A stretch of 64,000 nucleotides of DNA, taken from positions 62,001 to 126,000 of the forward strand of contig CBFFRP010000410.1 of the NCBI GenBank assembly GCA_965644295.1. Direction: 5' to 3'. Position 1 is the first letter of the stretch. Each line of letters begins with the position of its first letter. Position numbers and translations under genes: made by a program. The notes beneath the pieces were generated by a model. The model ran no database searches, was not told the DNA's origin, and saw nothing but the letters and a program-made list of their open reading frames with translations. Below are positions 3,201 to 14,799 of the stretch, piece by piece. The stretch is from Paraphysomonas bandaiensis. Taxonomy: Eukaryota; Protista; Chrysophyceae.

Positions 3201-4116
3201 ACATTTATACCTCTGTACAGTGGAAATATCTTCAAATATCTAGTTGACTGCTAGTTATATATGTATCTTTAAAAGATTTCACATCTGTTTTACCTATGGG
3301 ACTAGTCATCATAGCATTATCAGATTATTGTGATCACTGTTGTTTTATCTCACTGCATTCTACATTGAGTGGGAGTATTAGAATATGGATCTTATTCTAG
3401 TATATTCAGTATGTCACTTGAAGACAATGTACGAGTATACAGTGAAATATAGTGATGTACAAATGCTGTGATGATATTGAGAAACTGAAATAATTTTGAT
3501 CTTTCAAGATATGTTCAGTAACGAGAGGTTCGCATATGTAGGATATTATGCAGGGATTATAATGAGTTAGTGTTGGTTATCACAACTTCGTGTAAACGAT
3601 ATTAATAAATCTATCTAGTCTTACGACAAATTCTCTCTGTGATCTAGCTTAAAATGAGGAATTATCAATAGTGGTTTATTACATATTGGCATAATATTGC
3701 ATAAGCGACCGTCGTAGCTTGCCCAAAGATACTACTCACTTGTTGGTCACTTTATTACTACTAAGTAGTAAGTAGAATACAGTGATTACATGTGTGGGTA
3801 TTATTTATTATTGATAGCAGATGTGGCGAGTCTTCTTAACCCTTCTTGACGGAAAACATTTACTGCAATAACTTCTTCAAAAAGCTTGCTATATCCAACA
3901 TTTTTCACCGAATGATTTCGTTTTTATAAAACATATTATTATTTGCATAGTGAGTCATTATTTCACAAAAGTGGGTTTAAACTCATAAAACCACAGTATA
4001 TCATAGTACAGCGCACTGCCAGTGGAGGTTTTGCAACAAGGGGCACCGACAGCAGCAATGGTGCATGGCAGAATATAACTGCAGCATACTTTTACACCCT
4101 GTATCTAGACTATACA

Positions 4117-5525
4117 TTAAAGCAAGAAGGGCGTTTGTTTAGGAGATTGTCTGTAGATTTTCCTATCAGCAATGCAGACTATCTTCTTGGACAACTCAGG
4201 GCAAGTTCTCTTCAGCATCTCCTCAAGAGCAGCAGGGCGTGGAATCGGTCCACCGAAGAGCTGCAGCAATGACACAAAGTCAAATAAATAGAGGTCAGAA
4301 AATAGGGTGTACCTCTCGGGGCAAGTTCTTTGCCGCCAGGGCAGTGTGCACCTCTAGACCCTTCACTCCGATAGTACGGATGTCCACTTCTTCCATTTCG
4401 CCATTGACGTGCTCACTCAGGTCACGGATGAATGTCATGGCGCTCACCTTTCGTGATAAATATGAATTAGAATAAAAGATCACAACACTTCGCATAAACA
4501 TAGCATAGCTATTTCAACATAAAGGAGCAGCATTACTATACAGATAAACGTACCGTTTCACCAGGACATAAGTTATTAGGGTAGATACAGTCGACAAGTT
4601 CCTCAAACAGCACCTCATGAAGGTCTCTCGAAGCCAGAGAGCACGTAAGGGCAAATATCATTCCACCAGGAACCATAATCTCTTCATGTCGATACTTGCG
4701 GGTGTTAAAGTGTCTCTCGTGTGTTAATCGAGCAAGAGTAGCTAATTGCATGATATGTGTCTCAGAGAGGGGTCGAACAAGGGTGTGAAAAATAAGCTGT
4801 CCTGGGCGGAGATGGGAAAGAGTATGTGATCCCAACTCGGAGAGCTTTTCGCTACTGCTGATAAGGTGGTTGAGGTAGGTGTTTCCTTTGGCCTCCTCAG
4901 TCATGGGCACAACAACTTCAGACGAGGGCACATGGAATGGGAACATCATATGCTTCTCGCAGGTAAAAAGGTTGACATCGCGCTGGTTACGGATCTCACA
5001 GGCAATATGTGCAACAGTATTATTACCATCAGATGTAGACCTCAAACTCCGAATGACGAAGCGCTTGCGAAAGGTGTCCCCAGCGAATGCCGGCCAGTGG
5101 TAAACGCCATATCCGAACCCAATCTGAAGCTTGGCATGATCAGCATGACTCATAGATCCAGCTAGAAACAACATCAGAGAAAACGGAAGCACTTGATCCT
5201 GTAGACCGAGATGTCTAGCGAAAGGGGTGGATGTGTTCACTCGGTCATGAGAGTAGAACGCAGACTGCCACATATCGCGGATGCTCTGGTTCACAGTGAG
5301 CTCATAAGGAAGGTCGATCACATCACCGGGACGACACTTCGATAAATCGACAGTATGGTCCAATATTTCTCCGGATATATCGCCTTCTAAGTTGTTGTTT
5401 TGCACCTTATAAAACTGATCGAAATGTTTTTCATCAGCTCTGTGTGAAAACTGAGATGAGAAGGACCGAATGCATGCATTCGGATAGGTGCGGAGTTGTG
5501 TAGAGCGTCGTAACAAAGGTAACAT
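4117..5525 (-). CDS. Mesaconyl-CoA hydratase-like (double MaoC/hot-dog fold) protein with a predicted mitochondrial presequence; 3 exons
   Basis: Two MaoC-type halves (FARHLGL...PAFAGDTF...IRNQR and HERHFN...VPGG...PGETV) collinear with bacterial Mch. Arg/Ser-rich, acid-free N-terminus MLPLLRRSTQLRTYPNACIRSFSS. Introns at about 4449-4553 and 4262-4313. The last exon ends ...QTPFLL* at 4117. Confidence 0.75.
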
Positions 5526-6130
5526 ATTGGTAATCCTAATTCAAGAGGTATATGACGAGGGAATGCAATGTGGTATTGTGTAATGGCACTTAACGCACAA
5601 TGTTGCGGTTACCGTGCAGTGCATATATATGTACGTAGACAAGTAGGTCATGATGTATGTGCATGTACACAGTACGGTGTACGATGCAGTACGTACCATA
5701 TGGTATATATACAGCAGTATGTATGGTAGGAATTCTTATATACGTGGTAGAATACAATATATATACAATACAATACAAGAGGGTTTCAAAATTTTGAATT
5801 TCAGTGCGGGGAGTCTGTTTTTCCCAACAAGAATGAAGTTGTAAAGTACAGACAAGAAGACGAAGTGTGAAGTGTACATTCCAGTGCAGTGGATTACAGT
5901 CAGTGAGTATAGTAGGTGGATATGTATGTATATATCTAGATGAAGTCGAAGTCTCTATGGAACATCCAGAAGTCCAGTTGATAGTATAAGCATCGAGTAC
6001 ACTATCGCATATACATACATCATAGACATACATCGTCGAGCAGTATCATATATAACTATAACCCAGAAGATAATACCAAGTCACCCTCCTATGAATTGAA
6101 CACACCTCTCATACTCCAACCCCCCTCCCC

Positions 6131-9100
6131 ATGATCTCCCCTGACACCATCATATCCCGCTTCCTCATCCAGGACGAGGATGGGCATCAACTCGATGAAC
6201 TTAACCAGGACGATCTGCTGATGATGATGTCCGATGACCCCAACAATATTATTACTTATCCACTCGCTCTACTTCATGCGTCTCATCACCAGTCTCCTCA
6301 GGCAGCCATAAGACGTGTGCAAGTCTTCAAACAATCAATGAGTGTGTTAAAATCAGTCCAACGTGGAGATAAAGAGACACGTGATCTTTGCGATGAATTG
6401 TTCTCTATTATACGACTTATTAACCAATCAGAGGCTCAGGAGTGTGCGGAAGCTGTTCTCAAGGACTTCCTTCCGACTCCGGACACAGTGACGGGGTACT
6501 GCTACTGCTTGGAGCTCTTGCCGCAGCTGGTTGCACGAGCAGGGCCCGTATGCAGAGGTCAAGTATTCAGCAAGCTGTGCGAGATGTCCTGGGCCCCCTG
6601 TGTTATTGTTACAATGGCTTCTGCTCTTGTGGAACTCACTCAAACAGAGCAGGAGTGTCGTCAGGCTATCAGCAAGTTATCAGCTTATATCCAGTGGTCA
6701 GATATAGACTCTAGTAGTGTTGTAAATGGTGGTAGCTTAGACCCAGAGGATCTTCCTGCCTTAGTATACCAGCTAACTGCTCTGTCTCGGCGTGGAGGGG
6801 GGGCTGAATCTGCTACCGGAACGGGAAGTGGTTCAGCTGTTGTGCGTGGGATGGTGGTAGATGCTGTAGGGAGGGCATTAGACTCTTTAGTGGAGGCTAT
6901 TGACAACGCACGCCAGCTCGTATTGTCGGGAGAGGCTGGAGACCAAAGACGGAGGGGACTCTCCCGAGTGGAGCCTGTTCTCTCAACCATCATTCATCAC
7001 TTGTCGCTATTGGTATCAAAGGATCAGGTATATATTATTTATATGGAAACTATTGATTGTGCTCATGTTACCTCCTGCTGATTTCATATTCCAGGGGGTA
7101 TCATCTGAGATAGTTCGGTGTGTGCGAGCTCGGTCTCTTGTGAAGTACCGCTCTGTGGCTAATACCTCCTGCTCCCTGCTGACTGCCAGCAGACCGGAGG
7201 AGCGGCAGTTGCTGGATGAATTGTACAGTGCCTCTGACACCTGCAGTGGGCGCGTCCTCTCGCCGTCACGTATACTACTGGCATTATTGGCAGCCCGTGC
7301 GCCCAGATCGGAGAGTGCTGTGCTCGGTGGGATGACAGAGACAATTGCAGAGATACATGGGGCACTTCTGCGGGCAGGAAGCAGTGGCATCAATAATTTA
7401 TGGTTCCAAGGGGATGTATGGAGGGATGCTGCGCAGATTCACCCCCAACACTTACGTGACGCGTTTATGAGAATTCTGCGTGGGCCTCTCATGGTAGAAG
7501 CACTTGTTACTCCGCTCGTCAGACTGGCCTTTTCTCTCCTTTCTCATAAGACTCCCGGCCAAGCCAGGCGCTTTCCGTTACAGGGAGCGTCATGGGGGTC
7601 TCTTACCGCGTCCACCCCGTATTTTTCGGACCTTCCACTTCCCCAACTTTCAAGGCAACTCGACTATACAGGGAACACTTGTGCCTCTTTCGGTGCTTGG
7701 TTAGTGTATAGTCTCTTTATTTATAGCCGGCATACACGTTCACAAATCATGAAGGAGGTAGTGTTGCGACTCCAACTCTCTGGGTCACTTTCGGTTGGGG
7801 ACGGGGGAGGAGAGTACCACCAACATCAATCGGAAGGAGAGGTTCTTGTTGTCCTTGTCCTGAAGGGTTTAATAGAGAAATGTCTTGAAGGCATGATGGA
7901 GGTGTCGAGTGATTTGCAGGAAATCTTTTTGTCTCTTCCATCTTTGCATCCAGTTACTGCTGGTGAGATTGTAAGAGTTCTTCTCCCGCTCTTCGTATGT
8001 TCTCCAGGATTGGCAGATCGGTGTGCACTTTCCCTGCGTAAAGCTAGCTTCTCCAAGGATGTTGCTGGCAGACAGGCTGCAGTATGCGCTCTGACCGCAC
8101 TTCTCCGTGCTCAACTGGGTGCAACAGATGGCCGCCTTGCGTTTAACCCTCGTTCTCACTCCTCGCAGGATGATGAGATCACCATCAGAAGAGCACATAG
8201 GGGAGCTATAAATCACCAGGAGTATTTGTCTCAGAGAGTGTCAGGTCTGTCGGTTGATGAGGTACTCTCGCTCTGCCGACGCTTTATGCAGCATCAGGCT
8301 CCTGTAAGAGCCCTTCTCTATGATCGCATGGCCCGCCTACAAAACGACTTCTACAAATTTCGCGTTTTGCTTTTACGAACTGTCCGCCATCATCTCGGAA
8401 ATATTTTGACGGATGGCGATTCTCTCAGTGTGTCGGCAGATGCAGTTACAGGAGATGTAGATGTCTTGGGCGAAGGGCCTAAGGGATCTCTAGTTCTCAA
8501 CTTAAGGCGGTGTGTGGACTCCGCTGGTAACATAACAGAGGCCGTGAGTGACCTCATGCTATTTGCTTCTGGTATGGCCTGCATGTCTATTGCTATGGTC
8601 TCCAAGGAAACCTCAAACGGAGACCAATATGGGTTCTCACAGCAGTCTTATAGTCAGGAAAGCTACAGTCAATCACAGTCCAATAACACCACCCCTCATC
8701 ACCATTCACCAGATGCAGTTGATATATGTCGTTCACTCTGGCGACTTGCGCGTGGTCTAGCATATGCTGATCTGAGTGACCATGGTATGCCATTGCAAGT
8801 ATCAAGTAGCGCAGAGTACAAACGCTTAGTGGTGCTTGTGGAGGCCACACAGACCGCTATGATCTATGTGATGACGCTCCCGGAAGTGTTTGGTGGTGTT
8901 ACGTTATCACTTTCACACCGACTGAAGCTGCTGGAGAGCCTGTCTGACCGCCTGCAATTGATGTCTGCCGCTGCCCTAGCGTACCGCAAGTCTTGCCGTG
9001 ACTTAGAGAGGGAGAAGGCTAAAGAGTCTAGGCGCCGTGGAGCTACTCAGGATACTAGCTCTGAGCCCACTACTCATATCTCCCGCCTTCCGTTGCCTCG

Positions 9101-11381
9101 ACTACCAGGGGAAATGCAAGGTGTGGGTCGAGAGGTGGTTGGAGTGGAGGGGTGTAGTACCTTGGCGATGGAGCAGGAACTTGATTTCCTTCGGAGGTGC
9201 TTGTGTGAACTGAGCCCTGGAGAAGATGACGATGAGGAATGCGAGGAGGAAGAAGAAAACGCAAGGAGAAGTCTACAACACTGTCCTGGAGTGCAGTTTT
9301 TGACTAGGCATGTGCGGGAGAGATCCTTGCGGGTCGTTGAGAGTGTTTTGCAGTACATAGATGATGTTGCTCAGCGATATGCTTCTCCCTCTGTGACTGA
9401 TGAGGAGGGTGAGACTAAGGTGTTAGAGGATGGATTCTTTGATGGTATTTCGCGACTGCGTACCGGCATTCACTCTTTATATAGTGCTCTTTTACGGGAT
9501 ATGGTTCGACAGCGTACAGACGAGCTGGACCGTGTGGAGTCTTACAATACCCCTGCCGCTCCATCGCTTCTCTTTACGTCGGCATCTGTTGGAGCGCATT
9601 TGTATGACAAACAAGCTGTACTGAGAGGTATGCTCGGTTGTGTTCGCGCTGAATCTCTCTGTGGGGCTCTTCTGTCTACTACTTCATCCTCAGCTTCTCT
9701 GGAGAGGGCAGATGGCATGGCTAGTATGTTACGTGAGGGATTTAGTCGGGCGAATTTAAGGCGATTTCGGGAAGTGCAGGGGTCATCCCTTTCTGCGTCT
9801 GCCACTGGGTCGATGACACCTGCTGTTGACCTTGACTCGTATGCCAAAAAGTTTGTGAGCCTCTTCTTGAATATGCATGGGGCAGGTGGAAGGGATGGAG
9901 AGAGGAATGAGGCGCCACTAGTCGTTGCGATTATTGGTGAGATTGTTGATATTATGCCCGCCAATATGAAGGATAGCATGGGAGAATATATATACAAGCA
10001 GTGCCAAGAGAAGTTAGTGAAGTAAGTGTTGATGCTTTTTGATTTCTTCCAGGTATTATTTTATTGATACGCTTTGACAGTCCTTCGAACCAGCTATCTC
10101 AGGCATTGGTTCATTTGCTTGTCACTCGAGTGGCTCGTGACCCGACGAGCCGACTGTCTGCTCTTCAGAATATAGCTGGCATGGTTGAGAAGTGCTGTGC
10201 TGCACGGGGCGGATGGGACGAGGAAGATTTAGGTGATGGTGGGGGAGAGAGGGGAGGACATCTGGGAAATGAAACTTTCACAATTGTGTGTTTCGAAACT
10301 GTCGCCTCCACAGCAACAGCAATTGTAAGTCTTCTGGATCGGCTGGCTGGGGAAGCGGATGCTCTTTTGAAAGTAGTACTCAAGTCAAAGGGTGGGACAG
10401 GAATGAAAGAACCACTTTTGAGTGACGAAGAATTTGAATCCTCTGGAGGACTGAGAGATGGTTCTGCGATAAAAATCGATTCAGCTGTATGCGGTGCTGT
10501 ACAAGGGTGCATGGAAGCAGTCGTGAAGGTGAGATTTTAGTACCGTTGCCTTCTCTTGTCAAATAATGTATATTTTGTCAGTTGTTGGGGTACAACGACT
10601 CAGCCCAGGTCAGCATTAGCGTAATATCACTCTTCTTAAAGCTGTACAAGATCCAAGTGAAACTTACAAGGGATATTGCCAGTGGACTATCAAAGCGTAG
10701 AGTTTCAGCATCTATGGCTCTTAGTAGAGGTTTCCAAGAAATGTGTCAGCTCACGGCAGAGGAGGTGACGCCCAGCGTGCAGGGATATTTGACGCGAGTG
10801 CACAATAGTCTAGATAGTAGCGAGGGTGTTAATGGAGCAGGGGGTGGGGGGGCGAAGAAGGGTGTCCGCAACAAGCTTTCGAAGCTTATCCCTGAATTGA
10901 TATTCCAGGTACGTATCAGTGGTTAGTGATGCGCAGTTAATATGTGTCCTCTACAGATGGAACAGGTAGACTTGTATCTCATCAAACTTCTCTCACACCT
11001 CAAAGACAAGGATCGAATTGTTGTTGGAAAGTGAGTTCGATTTGAGTGCTGTTATGTCGTCTAAACGTGTACAGATGGATTAAGCGGTCAACCGCGCGAG
11101 ATTTTAGATTAAAAACTGATTTAATTGAGTCAGAACAAGATAGAGCACGAGAGTTAGCGGAAGATCGGGCTCATCGCAAGAGAGACCGCGAAAACAAAAT
11201 GAGCAGTCAGAGTGGCAAGAAAAAGAAGAAGCAACAGCCGACATCAGACGAGGAAGATGGGGGAGAGGAGGATCAGTACGAATATTACGGCGATGTTGCT
11301 GAGGTTGAAGCCGAAGAAAATGGGGAGAGATATTATGGTGGCGATGATGGAGATGAAAACGATAGTAATATGGTATATTAG
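6131..11381 (+). CDS. FANCI: Fanconi anemia group I protein homolog (multi-exon)
   Basis: LELLPQL, DLPALVYQL, LRKASFSKDVAGRQAAV, QAPVRALLY, KLIPELIFQ and IKRSTARDFRLK match conserved FANCI blocks. C-terminal NLS-like KKKKK and an acidic tail. ORF-track pieces join via short GT-AG introns. Confidence 0.88.
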
Positions 11382-12687: not shown

Positions 12688-13110
12688 TGGTTTGAAGAGA
12701 GAGACATTGGGAGGTGATCCTCTGATTGTGTTGTGGGAGGTTGAAATCTACTTCCACTGGAGAATAGAATTAGCTGCTTGTAGTTGTAGATATATGTATA
12801 CACCAGCATACACTTTAGCCACAGTGGACTCGCGATATAACGCGATACTGGTTTTTAGCAGAGAAGTGGCAGTATTTATATAAAAACCCATGTTTTTAGA
12901 ATAAAAGCTTCAGTGTCGGCCAGTAGGAATACAGGGACTATACAGTCCAGTCATACAGTGCTTTGTATGTGTGTATCTTAAGGACTCATAGTTACGTAAA
13001 GCTTCATAGTCTACGCACAGCAATGGGCTCTATGCATATAGATTGCACAGCCAGACGAGTAATACCTAGATAAGCATTCATCTCAATTGTTCTCTTATAC
13101 CGTAGCCTGT

Positions 13111-14799
13111 ATGACATCTTCCACCCCCGAGAGCGCTGTGCAGAGTGTGTTTAAGTTCTATAGAGAGCGTTGCAGAGAGGAAGCACTACTCACTAGTCAT
13201 GAATACAGACAGGAATACAGACAGGAATACAGTGGTGAGTGGACAGGTCGTGGACATAGATATGACTATATATACACTTACACTCACACTATGATCACAA
13301 TAGGAGGGAGCCATACAGCTTATGCCATGTTACTATGCAAGACCATTAAATCTGTACGTAAGTTCGTTCGTCAGAAGGAAGCGGAGCTACGCAGAGTTGT
13401 ATCTGATGCAAGAGACCGCAGGCAATATACAGATACTCAACTTGCAAAGGTCTGTTATCTTCATGGAGGTTATCTAGAGCTGCTTAACGACACTCGCGGT
13501 GCCCTTGAATCCTATGAAGCTGCTTTAAGTTTCATAAGCAAATCAGCGAATAGAGATCACACATTACATGAGCTCTTCTCGACGATTAAATATTCATACG
13601 AGCGTACCAAGATGCAGCTATCAATTGACAGTTCTCGACTAAGATTGGAAGCATCAGCCCCCCCTAGAGAATGCATCCGCCAGGATGTAGCACATGTAGA
13701 ATATGGGTCGATCAGCTACTCTAGCTTCTTGAATGCATTTGGCTTTACATGCACTCCGGTGGTATTTACCAATGCCGCCTCACATCTCCTAGATATCGAT
13801 TTCTGGTGTCTACCTTCCCTCATGAAACATATAGGCTCAAACACCGTCACACCAAAAGTATATGCAGAGGGTTCATATGAGTGGGCGAACCATGAGGATA
13901 CTGTGTCATGTACCATAGGCGATATCATACGGTCTTCGTTCCCTTCCGATGATGTACCAGGTGATTCTGTCGCGGCTTCCTCCAGTGCAACTGACTCGGA
14001 GAAAACTGCGAAGTGTAAGGGTTCCGAAACCTCGAAGCCGTACTTGGTGGATTGGAGTATACCGCAGCATTGTGCTACAGTGCTGGATATATTACCCTCC
14101 CCCCTTTTAATACCGAGATACTTCTCAGCTGACCTGCTTCAGCTTTGTCCTGAGGGCGTTTTGTATAGGGACACTTGGCCATCATTATTTATCGGCCCCA
14201 AGGGGTCGAAATCAGGTCTACACGTAGATTCATTCGGTAGCAACTTTTGGATGCTACTCATCACTGGTCGCAAGAAGTGGACGTTTTATTCTCCCGACGA
14301 TACGGCTCTTCTCCATCCCACATATCCGACTTCCTTTCAACCTGTTTTTCCTAGTGATGCTGTCAGTTCTGCGGTCCCGTCTTTTGAGGTAGTACTAAAC
14401 GCAGGAGAACTGCTGTTTGTACCCGCTGGAGCACCACACTCTGTAGAAAATCTGACCCCTACTATTGCGATATCAGCTAATTATGTTGATGAGTCTAACA
14501 TCGAGAGCTGTTTACGAAACCTCGAGCTCGAAGGACTGGTGTGTCCTAGATCCAAGGAACTATTTGACCAGTTAAAGTTCATTCACACCAACCACTCGTA
14601 TGATGCTGATAAATCGATGGCAGATAGTAAAGCTGCCTTTACATGGAGAGAATTTAAAGCTAGGAAATTAGTACCACGAAATGATTCCACTACTGTATTT
14701 AATCAAGATAGCTGTAATGGTGATGCTAAAACAGTTGACAGCGATTCATGTGATGTAGGTACTAAACAGCCTAGTTGTAAAAGAATGCGATTGTTATAG
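13111..14799 (+). CDS. JmjC-domain 2-oxoglutarate/Fe(II) oxygenase with N-terminal TPR-like helices
   Basis: WPSLFIGPKGSKSGLHVDSFG (HxD), GRKKWTF, GELLFVPAGAPHSVENL (distal His). Probable 69-nt in-frame intron at 13235-13303. Confidence 0.88.
   Translation: MTSSTPESAVQSVFKFYRERCREEALLTSHEYRQEYRQEYSGEWTGRGHRYDYIYTYTHTMITIGGSHTAYAMLLCKTIKSVRKFVRQKEAELRRVVSDARDRRQYTDTQLAKVCYLHGGYLELLNDTRGALESYEAALSFISKSANRDHTLHELFSTIKYSYERTKMQLSIDSSRLRLEASAPPRECIRQDVAHVEYGSISYSSFLNAFGFTCTPVVFTNAASHLLDIDFWCLPSLMKHIGSNTVTPKVYAEGSYEWANHEDTVSCTIGDIIRSSFPSDDVPGDSVAASSSATDSEKTAKCKGSETSKPYLVDWSIPQHCATVLDILPSPLLIPRYFSADLLQLCPEGVLYRDTWPSLFIGPKGSKSGLHVDSFGSNFWMLLITGRKKWTFYSPDDTALLHPTYPTSFQPVFPSDAVSSAVPSFEVVLNAGELLFVPAGAPHSVENLTPTIAISANYVDESNIESCLRNLELEGLVCPRSKELFDQLKFIHTNHSYDADKSMADSKAAFTWREFKARKLVPRNDSTTVFNQDSCNGDAKTVDSDSCDVGTKQPSCKRMRLL

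Follow-up and report, generated by a model that had tools for sequence, protein, structure and literature searches.

A predicted mitochondrial double-hotdog protein of Paraphysomonas bandaiensis is a distant homolog of mesaconyl-CoA hydratase with lyase-linked bacterial relatives

We analysed a gene on a 64,000-nucleotide stretch of DNA from the alga Paraphysomonas bandaiensis (contig CBFFRP010000410.1, positions 62,001 to 126,000; hereafter the window), which a preliminary description had read as a mitochondrion-targeted homolog of bacterial mesaconyl-coenzyme A (CoA) hydratase (Mch). The coding span (4117..5525) runs on the minus strand from the ATG at 5525 to the TAA at 4119-4117 and specifies a 416-aa product, P0001, which was found by a word search with exon 1 and served as our full-length reference. 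We found that the protein is a distant homolog of Mch and lies nearer to it than to the other enzymes compared, which were MFE-2, HTD2 and PaIch. It belongs to a separate and apparently uncharacterised family, the one most closely related to Mch, and in bacteria the members of this family are linked to lyases of the CitE type. The explanation that we prefer, to which we give an even chance, is that the algal protein is a mitochondrial member of this lyase-coupled sister family of Mch and works as a hydratase on short dicarboxylyl-CoA.

The AlphaFold model of the protein (pLDDT 86.5, pTM 0.83) is built of two hotdog halves, the first spanning roughly residues 60-200 and the second roughly 235-410. 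The N-terminal half, which contains Lys191, is encoded at 4926..5348, and the part of the C-terminal half that lies in exon 1 (about residues 235-324), with the invariant His247 and the central helix, is encoded at 4554..4823, both on the minus strand; before the last strand of the model, about 40 residues (357-395) form a helical insert. When the model was aligned with solved structures by VIA-align, the two best matches were Mch structures, 4e3e (Z 34.3) and 8hgn (Z 33.9), followed by Rv0216 of Mycobacterium tuberculosis (31.0), mycobacterial MaoC-like dehydratases (23), fungal FAS DH and MFE-2 hydratase-2 (about 20), HtdX and PaIch (17-18; PaIch 17.1-17.7 at 11% identity) and hotdog thioesterases (14-15). 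Foldseek values with the algal model were 6e-24 for 4e3e and 9e-23 for 8hgn. The hotdog fold together with a catalytic loop in the C-terminal half places the protein in the MaoC/hydratase-2 superfamily. The earlier label of a double MaoC protein was thus right at the level of the fold, as two hotdog halves are present and the best matches are double-hotdog hydratases; its preference for Mch over hydratase-2 agrees with the Z values, which are about 34 for Mch but only about 20 for MFE-2, with HtdX and PaIch at 17-18. Like Mch (MeaC, also known as beta-methylmalyl-CoA dehydratase; PF19315), the algal protein is a double-hotdog monomer of similar size, and 326 residues could be aligned with an rmsd of 3.0 Å; unlike Mch, it has the helical insert and, at its N-terminus, a eukaryotic extension of about 50 residues. 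The itaconyl-CoA hydratase PaIch (8huc/8khg) and the MFE-2 hydratase-2 and HTD2 enzymes share with it the MaoC superfamily and a double-hotdog or hotdog-dimer architecture, but they belong to different subfamilies, with Z values of 17-20 and about 10% identity.

Sequence comparisons gave the same nearest relatives. A single-sequence search of solved structures returned only 4e3e (7e-8), and a search with the family profile returned 4e3e (2.4e-9) and 8hgn (MeaC/Mch, 0.0024) and did not retrieve PaIch. An Mch from Rhodobacterales (L028:7640-8665), which is PF19315-positive and lies near mcl2, mdh and sdh, matched 4e3e (1e-125) and 8hgn (5e-124) equally well, so that 4e3e is itself an Mch; its assignment as the C4-hydratase Meh was ruled out by this match and by the presence of the MeMeaC active-site residues in 4e3e. 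Alignment of the eukaryotic family with the Mch alignment by hhalign gave a probability of 99.5%, an E value of 1.3e-22 and 21% identity, and BLASTP of the algal protein against Mch gave 22% identity. PF19315 (gathering cut-off 26.5 bits) did not match P0001 at E<=1, nor did it find any match in the algal genome, which was searched here and below exon by exon, a procedure by which absence cannot be proven. Among 39 diverse family members, 9 were matched by PF19315 at E<=0.01, and weak matches of the relatives in Pfam were to PF13452, PF01575 and PF19315.

We then placed the family in a maximum-likelihood tree of 100 sequences, in which Mch was represented by Rhodobacterales only, because every protein returned by the Mch-seeded word search came from Rhodobacterales, at 84% identity or more, and which included no Meh, PhaJ or HTD2 sequences. 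In this tree Mch stands apart from the family on a long branch (about 3 changes per site; SH-aLRT 100). The eukaryote-type sequences are monophyletic (40 rows, SH-aLRT 100) and lie among bacterial clades of unsettled order; they come from ochrophyte algae, a chlorarachniophyte and Paulinella, and all of them are without a lyase domain. Metagenomic proteins were assigned to a domain of origin from their architecture and N-termini only. Identity of 21-22%, the missing PF19315 match and the long branch together indicate that the algal protein is not an Mch orthologue, so the homology claimed in the preliminary description stands and orthology does not. A side observation concerns P0448, deposited as a protein of the alga Chrysoparadoxa australica: it is 100% identical to Mch of Mameliella (Rhodobacterales) over 326 residues and is probably bacterial contamination of that assembly.

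An exhaustive profile search identified 710 relatives, 217 of them at E<=1e-30, and many are proteins of 650-950 aa with the hotdog domain at the C-terminal end. An N-terminal HpcH_HpaI lyase domain (CitE/CLYBL/Mcl type) was detected in 8 of the 10 matches tested with Pfam, all of at least 670 aa. These bacterial lyase fusions resemble the algal protein at 24-33% full-length identity and 165-290 bits with the profile, and they share the invariant His247 and Arg406; in contrast to the fusions, which carry or adjoin a lyase, the algal protein is stand-alone, has a predicted presequence and carries the loop L-T-H-E-R-H. ESM Atlas structure neighbours were the same lyase fusions, and the protein's own cluster there is auto-named 'citrate lyase family'. 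Three of the eight fusions have an extra N-terminal domain, which is Sua5/YciO/YrdC in two and cNMP-binding in one (P0176 and P0208, both of about 880 aa, and P0232 of 951 aa), and these domains hint at regulation or a third activity.

To count the linkage we used 57 loci from a scan of species-representative genomes, all of them metagenome-assembled genomes (MAGs), which come mostly from Planctomycetota and Myxococcota and also from Alphaproteobacteria, Bacteroidota, Spirochaetota and others. The lyase is fused at 21 of these loci, is encoded directly upstream, frequently with overlap, at about 24, and lies within about 2 kb or directly downstream at 5. About 50 of the 57 are therefore lyase-linked, and the remaining loci are mostly incomplete contigs or the most distant members. 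In marine Planctomycetes the genes form a lyase-hydratase-hydratase operon, and both hydratase paralogs belong to the family; in the Planctomycetota operon at L017:5910-9125 (also L018-L020, L038-L040, L046, L050 and L079) the catalytic-Asn position is Asn in one paralog and Glu in the other. The gene upstream of this operon was considered as a hidden CoA-transferase and was ruled out, as it is dockerin-like only; no family-III CoA-transferase was found near the 57 loci. MM_CoA_mutase lies beside three loci, and these are genuine ethylmalonyl-type clusters with a PF19315-positive Mch, as in the Myxococcota/Deltaproteobacteria MAG locus L082:3063-9065 (similar in L084 and L088), where the genes encode a CoA mutase, an HpcH-type lyase of 392 aa, an acyl-CoA dehydrogenase of 556 aa and an Mch-like hydratase that is PF19315-positive. 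We also observed a lyase-hotdog fusion gene with an intron of about 1.6 kb and an N-terminus like a mitochondrial targeting peptide on an AT-rich, eukaryote-like metagenomic contig of 373 kb (L021:5931-9653); in the tree this protein groups with the bacterial fusion clade and not with the algal clade.

Fusion of two enzymes is usually read as a sign that they act consecutively. From the fusion or adjacency to lyases, we infer that the family hydrates or dehydrates the CoA ester formed or split by a CitE-type lyase, with beta-methylmalyl-, citramalyl-, malyl- or 3-hydroxy-3-methylglutaryl-CoA as candidate lyase substrates. Mch likewise works beside a CitE-type lyase, and PaIch, which works with the CitE-type lyase Ccl, shares this feature too. 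The bacterial fusions and operons thus give strong backing to a functional link with a lyase of CitE/CLYBL/Mcl type, in line with the CLYBL/Mcl-type lyase of the preliminary description; in the alga itself, the only CitE-family protein has no presequence.

In MeMeaC, bound malate is surrounded by Phe71, Ser79, Asn85, Arg142, Asn226, His231, Tyr248 and Gly249, and Asn226 and His231 were proposed as the water-activating pair that holds the 3-hydroxyl and water (PMC10164722). Alignments showed that His231 is kept as His272 in the algal protein and that the carboxylate-binding Arg142 is conservatively replaced by Lys191. Asn226 corresponds to Leu267, Tyr248 to Pro286, Phe71 to Gly123 and Asn85 to Gln134, the loop that carries Ser79 is three residues shorter, and His206 of MeMeaC/Mch corresponds to His247. 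The counterpart of the catalytic loop comprises residues 266-274, R-L-T-H-E-R-H-F-N (4704..4730, minus strand), in which Leu267 stands for Asn/Asp and His272 is kept. The loop motif of hydratase-2 enzymes is D-x-N-P-[LIV]-H, and the algal L-T-H-E-R-H agrees with it only at the His.

Column counts over 183 family members showed that His247 and Arg406 are invariant, Glu343 is nearly invariant, and conservation is high at Lys191 and His272. Among the 69 close eukaryotic members, 68 retain His272, and it is retained everywhere else save part of a 'mid' eukaryotic group. Position 270 is Glu or Asp in 61 of the 69 close members, this group reads L-T-H-E-R-H, and His127, His303 and Glu304 are invariant residues specific to eukaryotes. 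The bacterial loop reads x-T-[H/N]-P-x-H, mostly as the canonical-looking N/E-T-H/N-P-x-H, and the bacterial residue at position 267 is Asn or Glu in about half of the members and non-polar in the remainder. A strict 'residue migration' from Asn267 to Glu270 was ruled out, since many bacterial members pair a non-polar residue 267 with Pro270. Judging from these alignments, the pocket retains the catalytic His and a basic residue for a distal carboxylate and is remodelled elsewhere; hydratase chemistry is plausible, not assured.

The N-terminus of the algal protein is rich in Arg and Ser, and its first 30 residues hold five Arg and no acidic residue. The sequence R20-S21-F22-S23-S24, with which the preliminary description had ended the presequence, is present as described and fits the R-3 cleavage pattern of mitochondrial presequences, and residues 1-22 (5460..5525, minus strand), Arg-rich, acid-free and ending in an R-x-F|S motif, were predicted as a mitochondrial targeting peptide. 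Residues 1-50 have no counterpart in the bacterial relatives, and AlphaFold confidence is low there (pLDDT below 50 for residues 1-22). These features recur across 86 eukaryotic homologs: the N-terminal extension has a median length of 59 aa, the first 30 residues contain a median of 5 Arg/Lys compared with 1 Asp/Glu, an R-x-[FYL]-[SA] motif occurs in 44 of the 86, and a signal-peptide-like hydrophobic stretch occurs in none. Basic, acid-free N-termini without a hydrophobic stretch favour mitochondrial targeting over plastid or peroxisomal targeting, and the algal protein carries no PTS1. On these sequence features the algal protein is probably mitochondrial, rather than directed to the plastid by a signal peptide or to the peroxisome.

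We further examined the algal genome for possible partner enzymes. It contains one CitE-family gene (G000:C252:24234-25052; L001:1483-2349), whose coding region is intronless; the hydratase-like gene is neither fused nor adjacent to a lyase gene, and this sole CitE-like gene lies on another contig, C252. The encoded protein, P0301, is a complete transcript product of 288 aa; like most algal orthologues it starts at the conserved start of the barrel and therefore has no presequence. Among solved structures P0301 is closest to Mcl (3e-38) and CLYBL (1e-32), and the gene may be an alphaproteobacterial-type gene that is common to ochrophytes (Ochromonadaceae, Ectocarpus). No Mct-type mesaconyl-CoA transferase stood out, and the best family-III CoA-transferase was an orthologue of SUGCT, succinate-hydroxymethylglutarate CoA-transferase (G000:C73:63366-64532; L002:1408-2760, minus strand), which matches the structure of the human enzyme at 1.7e-108 and has an N-terminal extension of about 30 residues that resembles a mitochondrial presequence. 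A multi-exon gene for B12-type methylmalonyl-CoA mutase is also present, and three further genes exceed the MaoC Pfam cut-off and could fill the HTD2 or MFE-2 roles. The best match for crotonyl-CoA carboxylase/reductase (Ccr, TIGR01751) reached 64 bits against a cut-off of 378.55, and genes of the methylaspartate cycle were not searched for.

The set of partners suggested in the preliminary description was thus recovered only in part. The genome has a CitE-like gene, SUGCT and the mutase, but neither a Ccr above cut-off nor an Mct-type transferase was found, and the lyase lacks a presequence. The alga resembles the mammalian mitochondrial C5-dicarboxylate route (SUGCT/CLYBL; itaconyl-CoA to citramalyl-CoA) in having SUGCT, a CitE/CLYBL-family protein and a B12-type mutase. 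It differs from that route in that its CitE-like protein is Mcl2-like and without a presequence, and no mammalian member of the hydratase-like family was among the results obtained.

The structure and expression of the gene were established from transcripts. Exon 1 (4554..5525, 324 codons) encodes the predicted presequence, the whole N-terminal hotdog, the linker and half of the C-terminal hotdog, namely its first; it is followed by intron 1 (4448..4553, 106 nt), exon 2 (4313..4447, 45 codons), intron 2 (4261..4312, 52 nt) and exon 3 (4117..4260, 47 codons and the TAA), which encodes the last beta-strand and the family-invariant Arg406. Both introns are of the GT..AG type, and all of these features lie on the minus strand, as do the 5' untranslated region (5526..5589, the limit of the transcript contigs) and the 3' untranslated region (4024..4116, with the contigs of two runs extending at least to 4000). 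P0001, an MMETSP transcript marked complete, equals the translations of exons 1, 2 and 3 in order at 100% identity. Spliced contigs from 4 public runs of 4 studies, one of them a polyA marine metatranscriptome, cover about 4024-5589 and omit precisely the two introns, so the two spliceosomal introns of the preliminary description are real. The gene is single-copy in the 62.6-Mb assembly, and bacterial contamination as its source was ruled out by the spliceosomal introns, the polyA transcripts and the eukaryotic neighbour genes.

These neighbours are unrelated to the hydratase-like gene. Two overlapping long open reading frames (ORFs) at 6131-10025 of the window (plus strand) match FANCI solenoid 1 and solenoid 2 and are probably one FANCI-like gene with an intron or a frameshift, in divergent orientation to the hydratase-like gene. 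The intergenic region between the two (5590-5800) contains many short 'gtat/atat/tacg' repeats and spurious ORFs on both strands and may be a promoter region that the two genes share. At 13087-14799 (plus strand) lies an ORF of 570 aa with a JmjC/cupin-8 domain.

The bacterial family is nearly always fused to a lyase or encoded directly after one, so its ancestral step was most likely next to the lyase. In the preferred explanation, the ancestral job would be the reversible hydration of a short dicarboxylic 2-enoyl-CoA, such as mesaconyl-CoA, itaconyl-CoA or another C4-C5 dicarboxylyl-CoA related to these, and the resulting 3-hydroxyacyl-CoA would be the compound formed or split by the lyase. 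The acyl-CoA would sit between the two hotdog halves, its distal carboxylate would be held by Lys191, the counterpart of Arg142 in Mch, and water would be activated by His272 with His269 and/or Glu270 of the L-T-H-E-R-H loop. Our data establish the gene model and its expression, the fold, membership in the family, the link to lyases in bacteria and the monophyly of the eukaryote-type sequences; for the alga, the mitochondrial location, the hydratase activity and the substrate class are inferred, and the unlinked CitE-like protein is a candidate partner.

Several observations weigh against this explanation. The chemistry may differ from that of canonical hydratase-2, since the Asn/Asp position is Leu, Ile or Val in all 69 close eukaryotic members and non-polar in more than half of the bacterial fusions, and since His272 is frequently lost in the 'mid' group. 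Rv0216 is nearly as close in fold, and it is not known to have hydratase activity. Neither the single exons nor P0001 had a significant family match in Pfam or NCBIfam. Among 73 genes directly beside the bacterial loci, tallied with Pfam, no partner such as a CoA-transferase or a dehydrogenase recurred, and a literature search returned no paper on the family and no biochemical data for any member. P0301 is 47-49% identical to Rhodobacterales proteins named 'CoA ester lyase / (3S)-malyl-CoA thioesterase' (Mcl2-type) that are located two genes from mch, whereas its identity to the lyase domain of one fusion protein is only 31%. As it has no presequence, the CitE-like and hotdog proteins may not share a compartment, and the algal lyase probably sits in a different one. 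Some of these points would be expected if the eukaryotic clade had taken on a new function after losing the fused lyase and the Asn/Asp, whether as an acyl-CoA thioesterase or isomerase or, like the double hotdog Rv0216, as a non-catalytic protein that binds acyl-CoA or serves as a scaffold. The aliphatic residue 267, the loss of His272 in much of the 'mid' group, the eukaryote-specific His127, His303 and Glu304, the Z value of 31.0 for Rv0216, the fold shared with hotdog thioesterases (Z 14-15) and the compartment mismatch all speak for such a change. Rv0216 itself, a double hotdog and the third-best structural match, is only 15% identical to the algal protein and has no lyase association shown, and it gives no functional transfer. 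The sequences are strongly conserved over ochrophytes, a chlorarachniophyte and Paulinella, His272 is retained in 68 of the 69 close members, Glu/Asp270 was gained in 61, Lys191 is kept, and the clade is nested among lyase-coupled hydratase-like proteins, which together make a new function rather unlikely in our view.

We consider it improbable that the protein is a true Mch orthologue which interconverts beta-methylmalyl-CoA and mesaconyl-C1-CoA and works with a mitochondrial Mcl/CLYBL lyase, as part of a route of the ethylmalonyl-CoA, methylaspartate or 3-hydroxypropionate type in the mitochondrion. Such an enzyme would account for Mch structures being the best structural and profile matches, for the lyase coupling in bacteria, for the retained counterparts of Arg142 and His231, and for the bacterial relatives of the algal CitE-family gene near mch. 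However, the protein falls below the PF19315 threshold at 21-22% identity and sits in a separate clade behind a long, fully supported branch, with no PF19315 match elsewhere in the genome. The changes of Asn226 to Leu, Phe71 to Gly and Tyr248 to Pro and the shortened Ser79 loop also oppose orthology, as do the lack of a Ccr above cut-off (64 vs 378 bits), the lyase without a presequence, and the use of PF19315-positive proteins in genuine ethylmalonyl-CoA clusters with mutase, lyase, acyl-CoA dehydrogenase and Mch. Very improbable, to our judgement, is an ordinary fatty-acid-type (R)-hydratase, either the HTD2 that serves type II fatty-acid synthesis in mitochondria or a beta-oxidation enzyme of the MFE-2/PhaJ kind. 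The MaoC-superfamily fold and the mitochondrial-type N-terminus would fit this assignment, but MFE-2 hydratase-2 and HtdX reach Z values of only 17-20 compared with 34 for Mch, PTS1 is missing, and the three other MaoC genes above cut-off could serve those roles. In addition, the conserved Lys at the carboxylate-binding position and the bacterial lyase coupling favour a dicarboxylyl-CoA over a fatty acyl substrate.

Beyond the preferred explanation, we tentatively propose a bolder possibility, which we hold to be doubtful but worth stating. Mitochondria of ochrophyte and rhizarian algae may import a rewired member of the family, with the catalytic Asn changed to Leu and a Glu gained in the same loop, for a dicarboxylyl-CoA conversion that would be new to eukaryotes, and the bacterial fusions may represent a widespread, unrecognised two-step module of marine Planctomycetota and Myxococcota. 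One candidate conversion is that of mesaconyl-CoA and beta-methylmalyl-CoA in the assimilation of glyoxylate plus propionyl-CoA; another is that of itaconyl- or mesaconyl-C4-CoA and citramalyl-CoA, which would shield the B12-dependent methylmalonyl-CoA mutase.

If the preferred explanation is true, a new enzyme family with hundreds of members would stand beside Mch, its function hinted at by bacterial gene fusions. The changed catalytic loop is a natural experiment in how hotdog hydratases position their catalytic residues, and a eukaryotic clade that proved inactive or otherwise active would illustrate how a hydratase fold is repurposed after the loss of its fused partner. The preferred explanation would also assign a step on C5-dicarboxylyl-CoA or related esters to the mitochondria of algae that dominate ecologically, among them diatoms, pelagophytes and eustigmatophytes, and would bear on how these algae handle glyoxylate, propionyl-CoA and B12-poisoning CoA esters.

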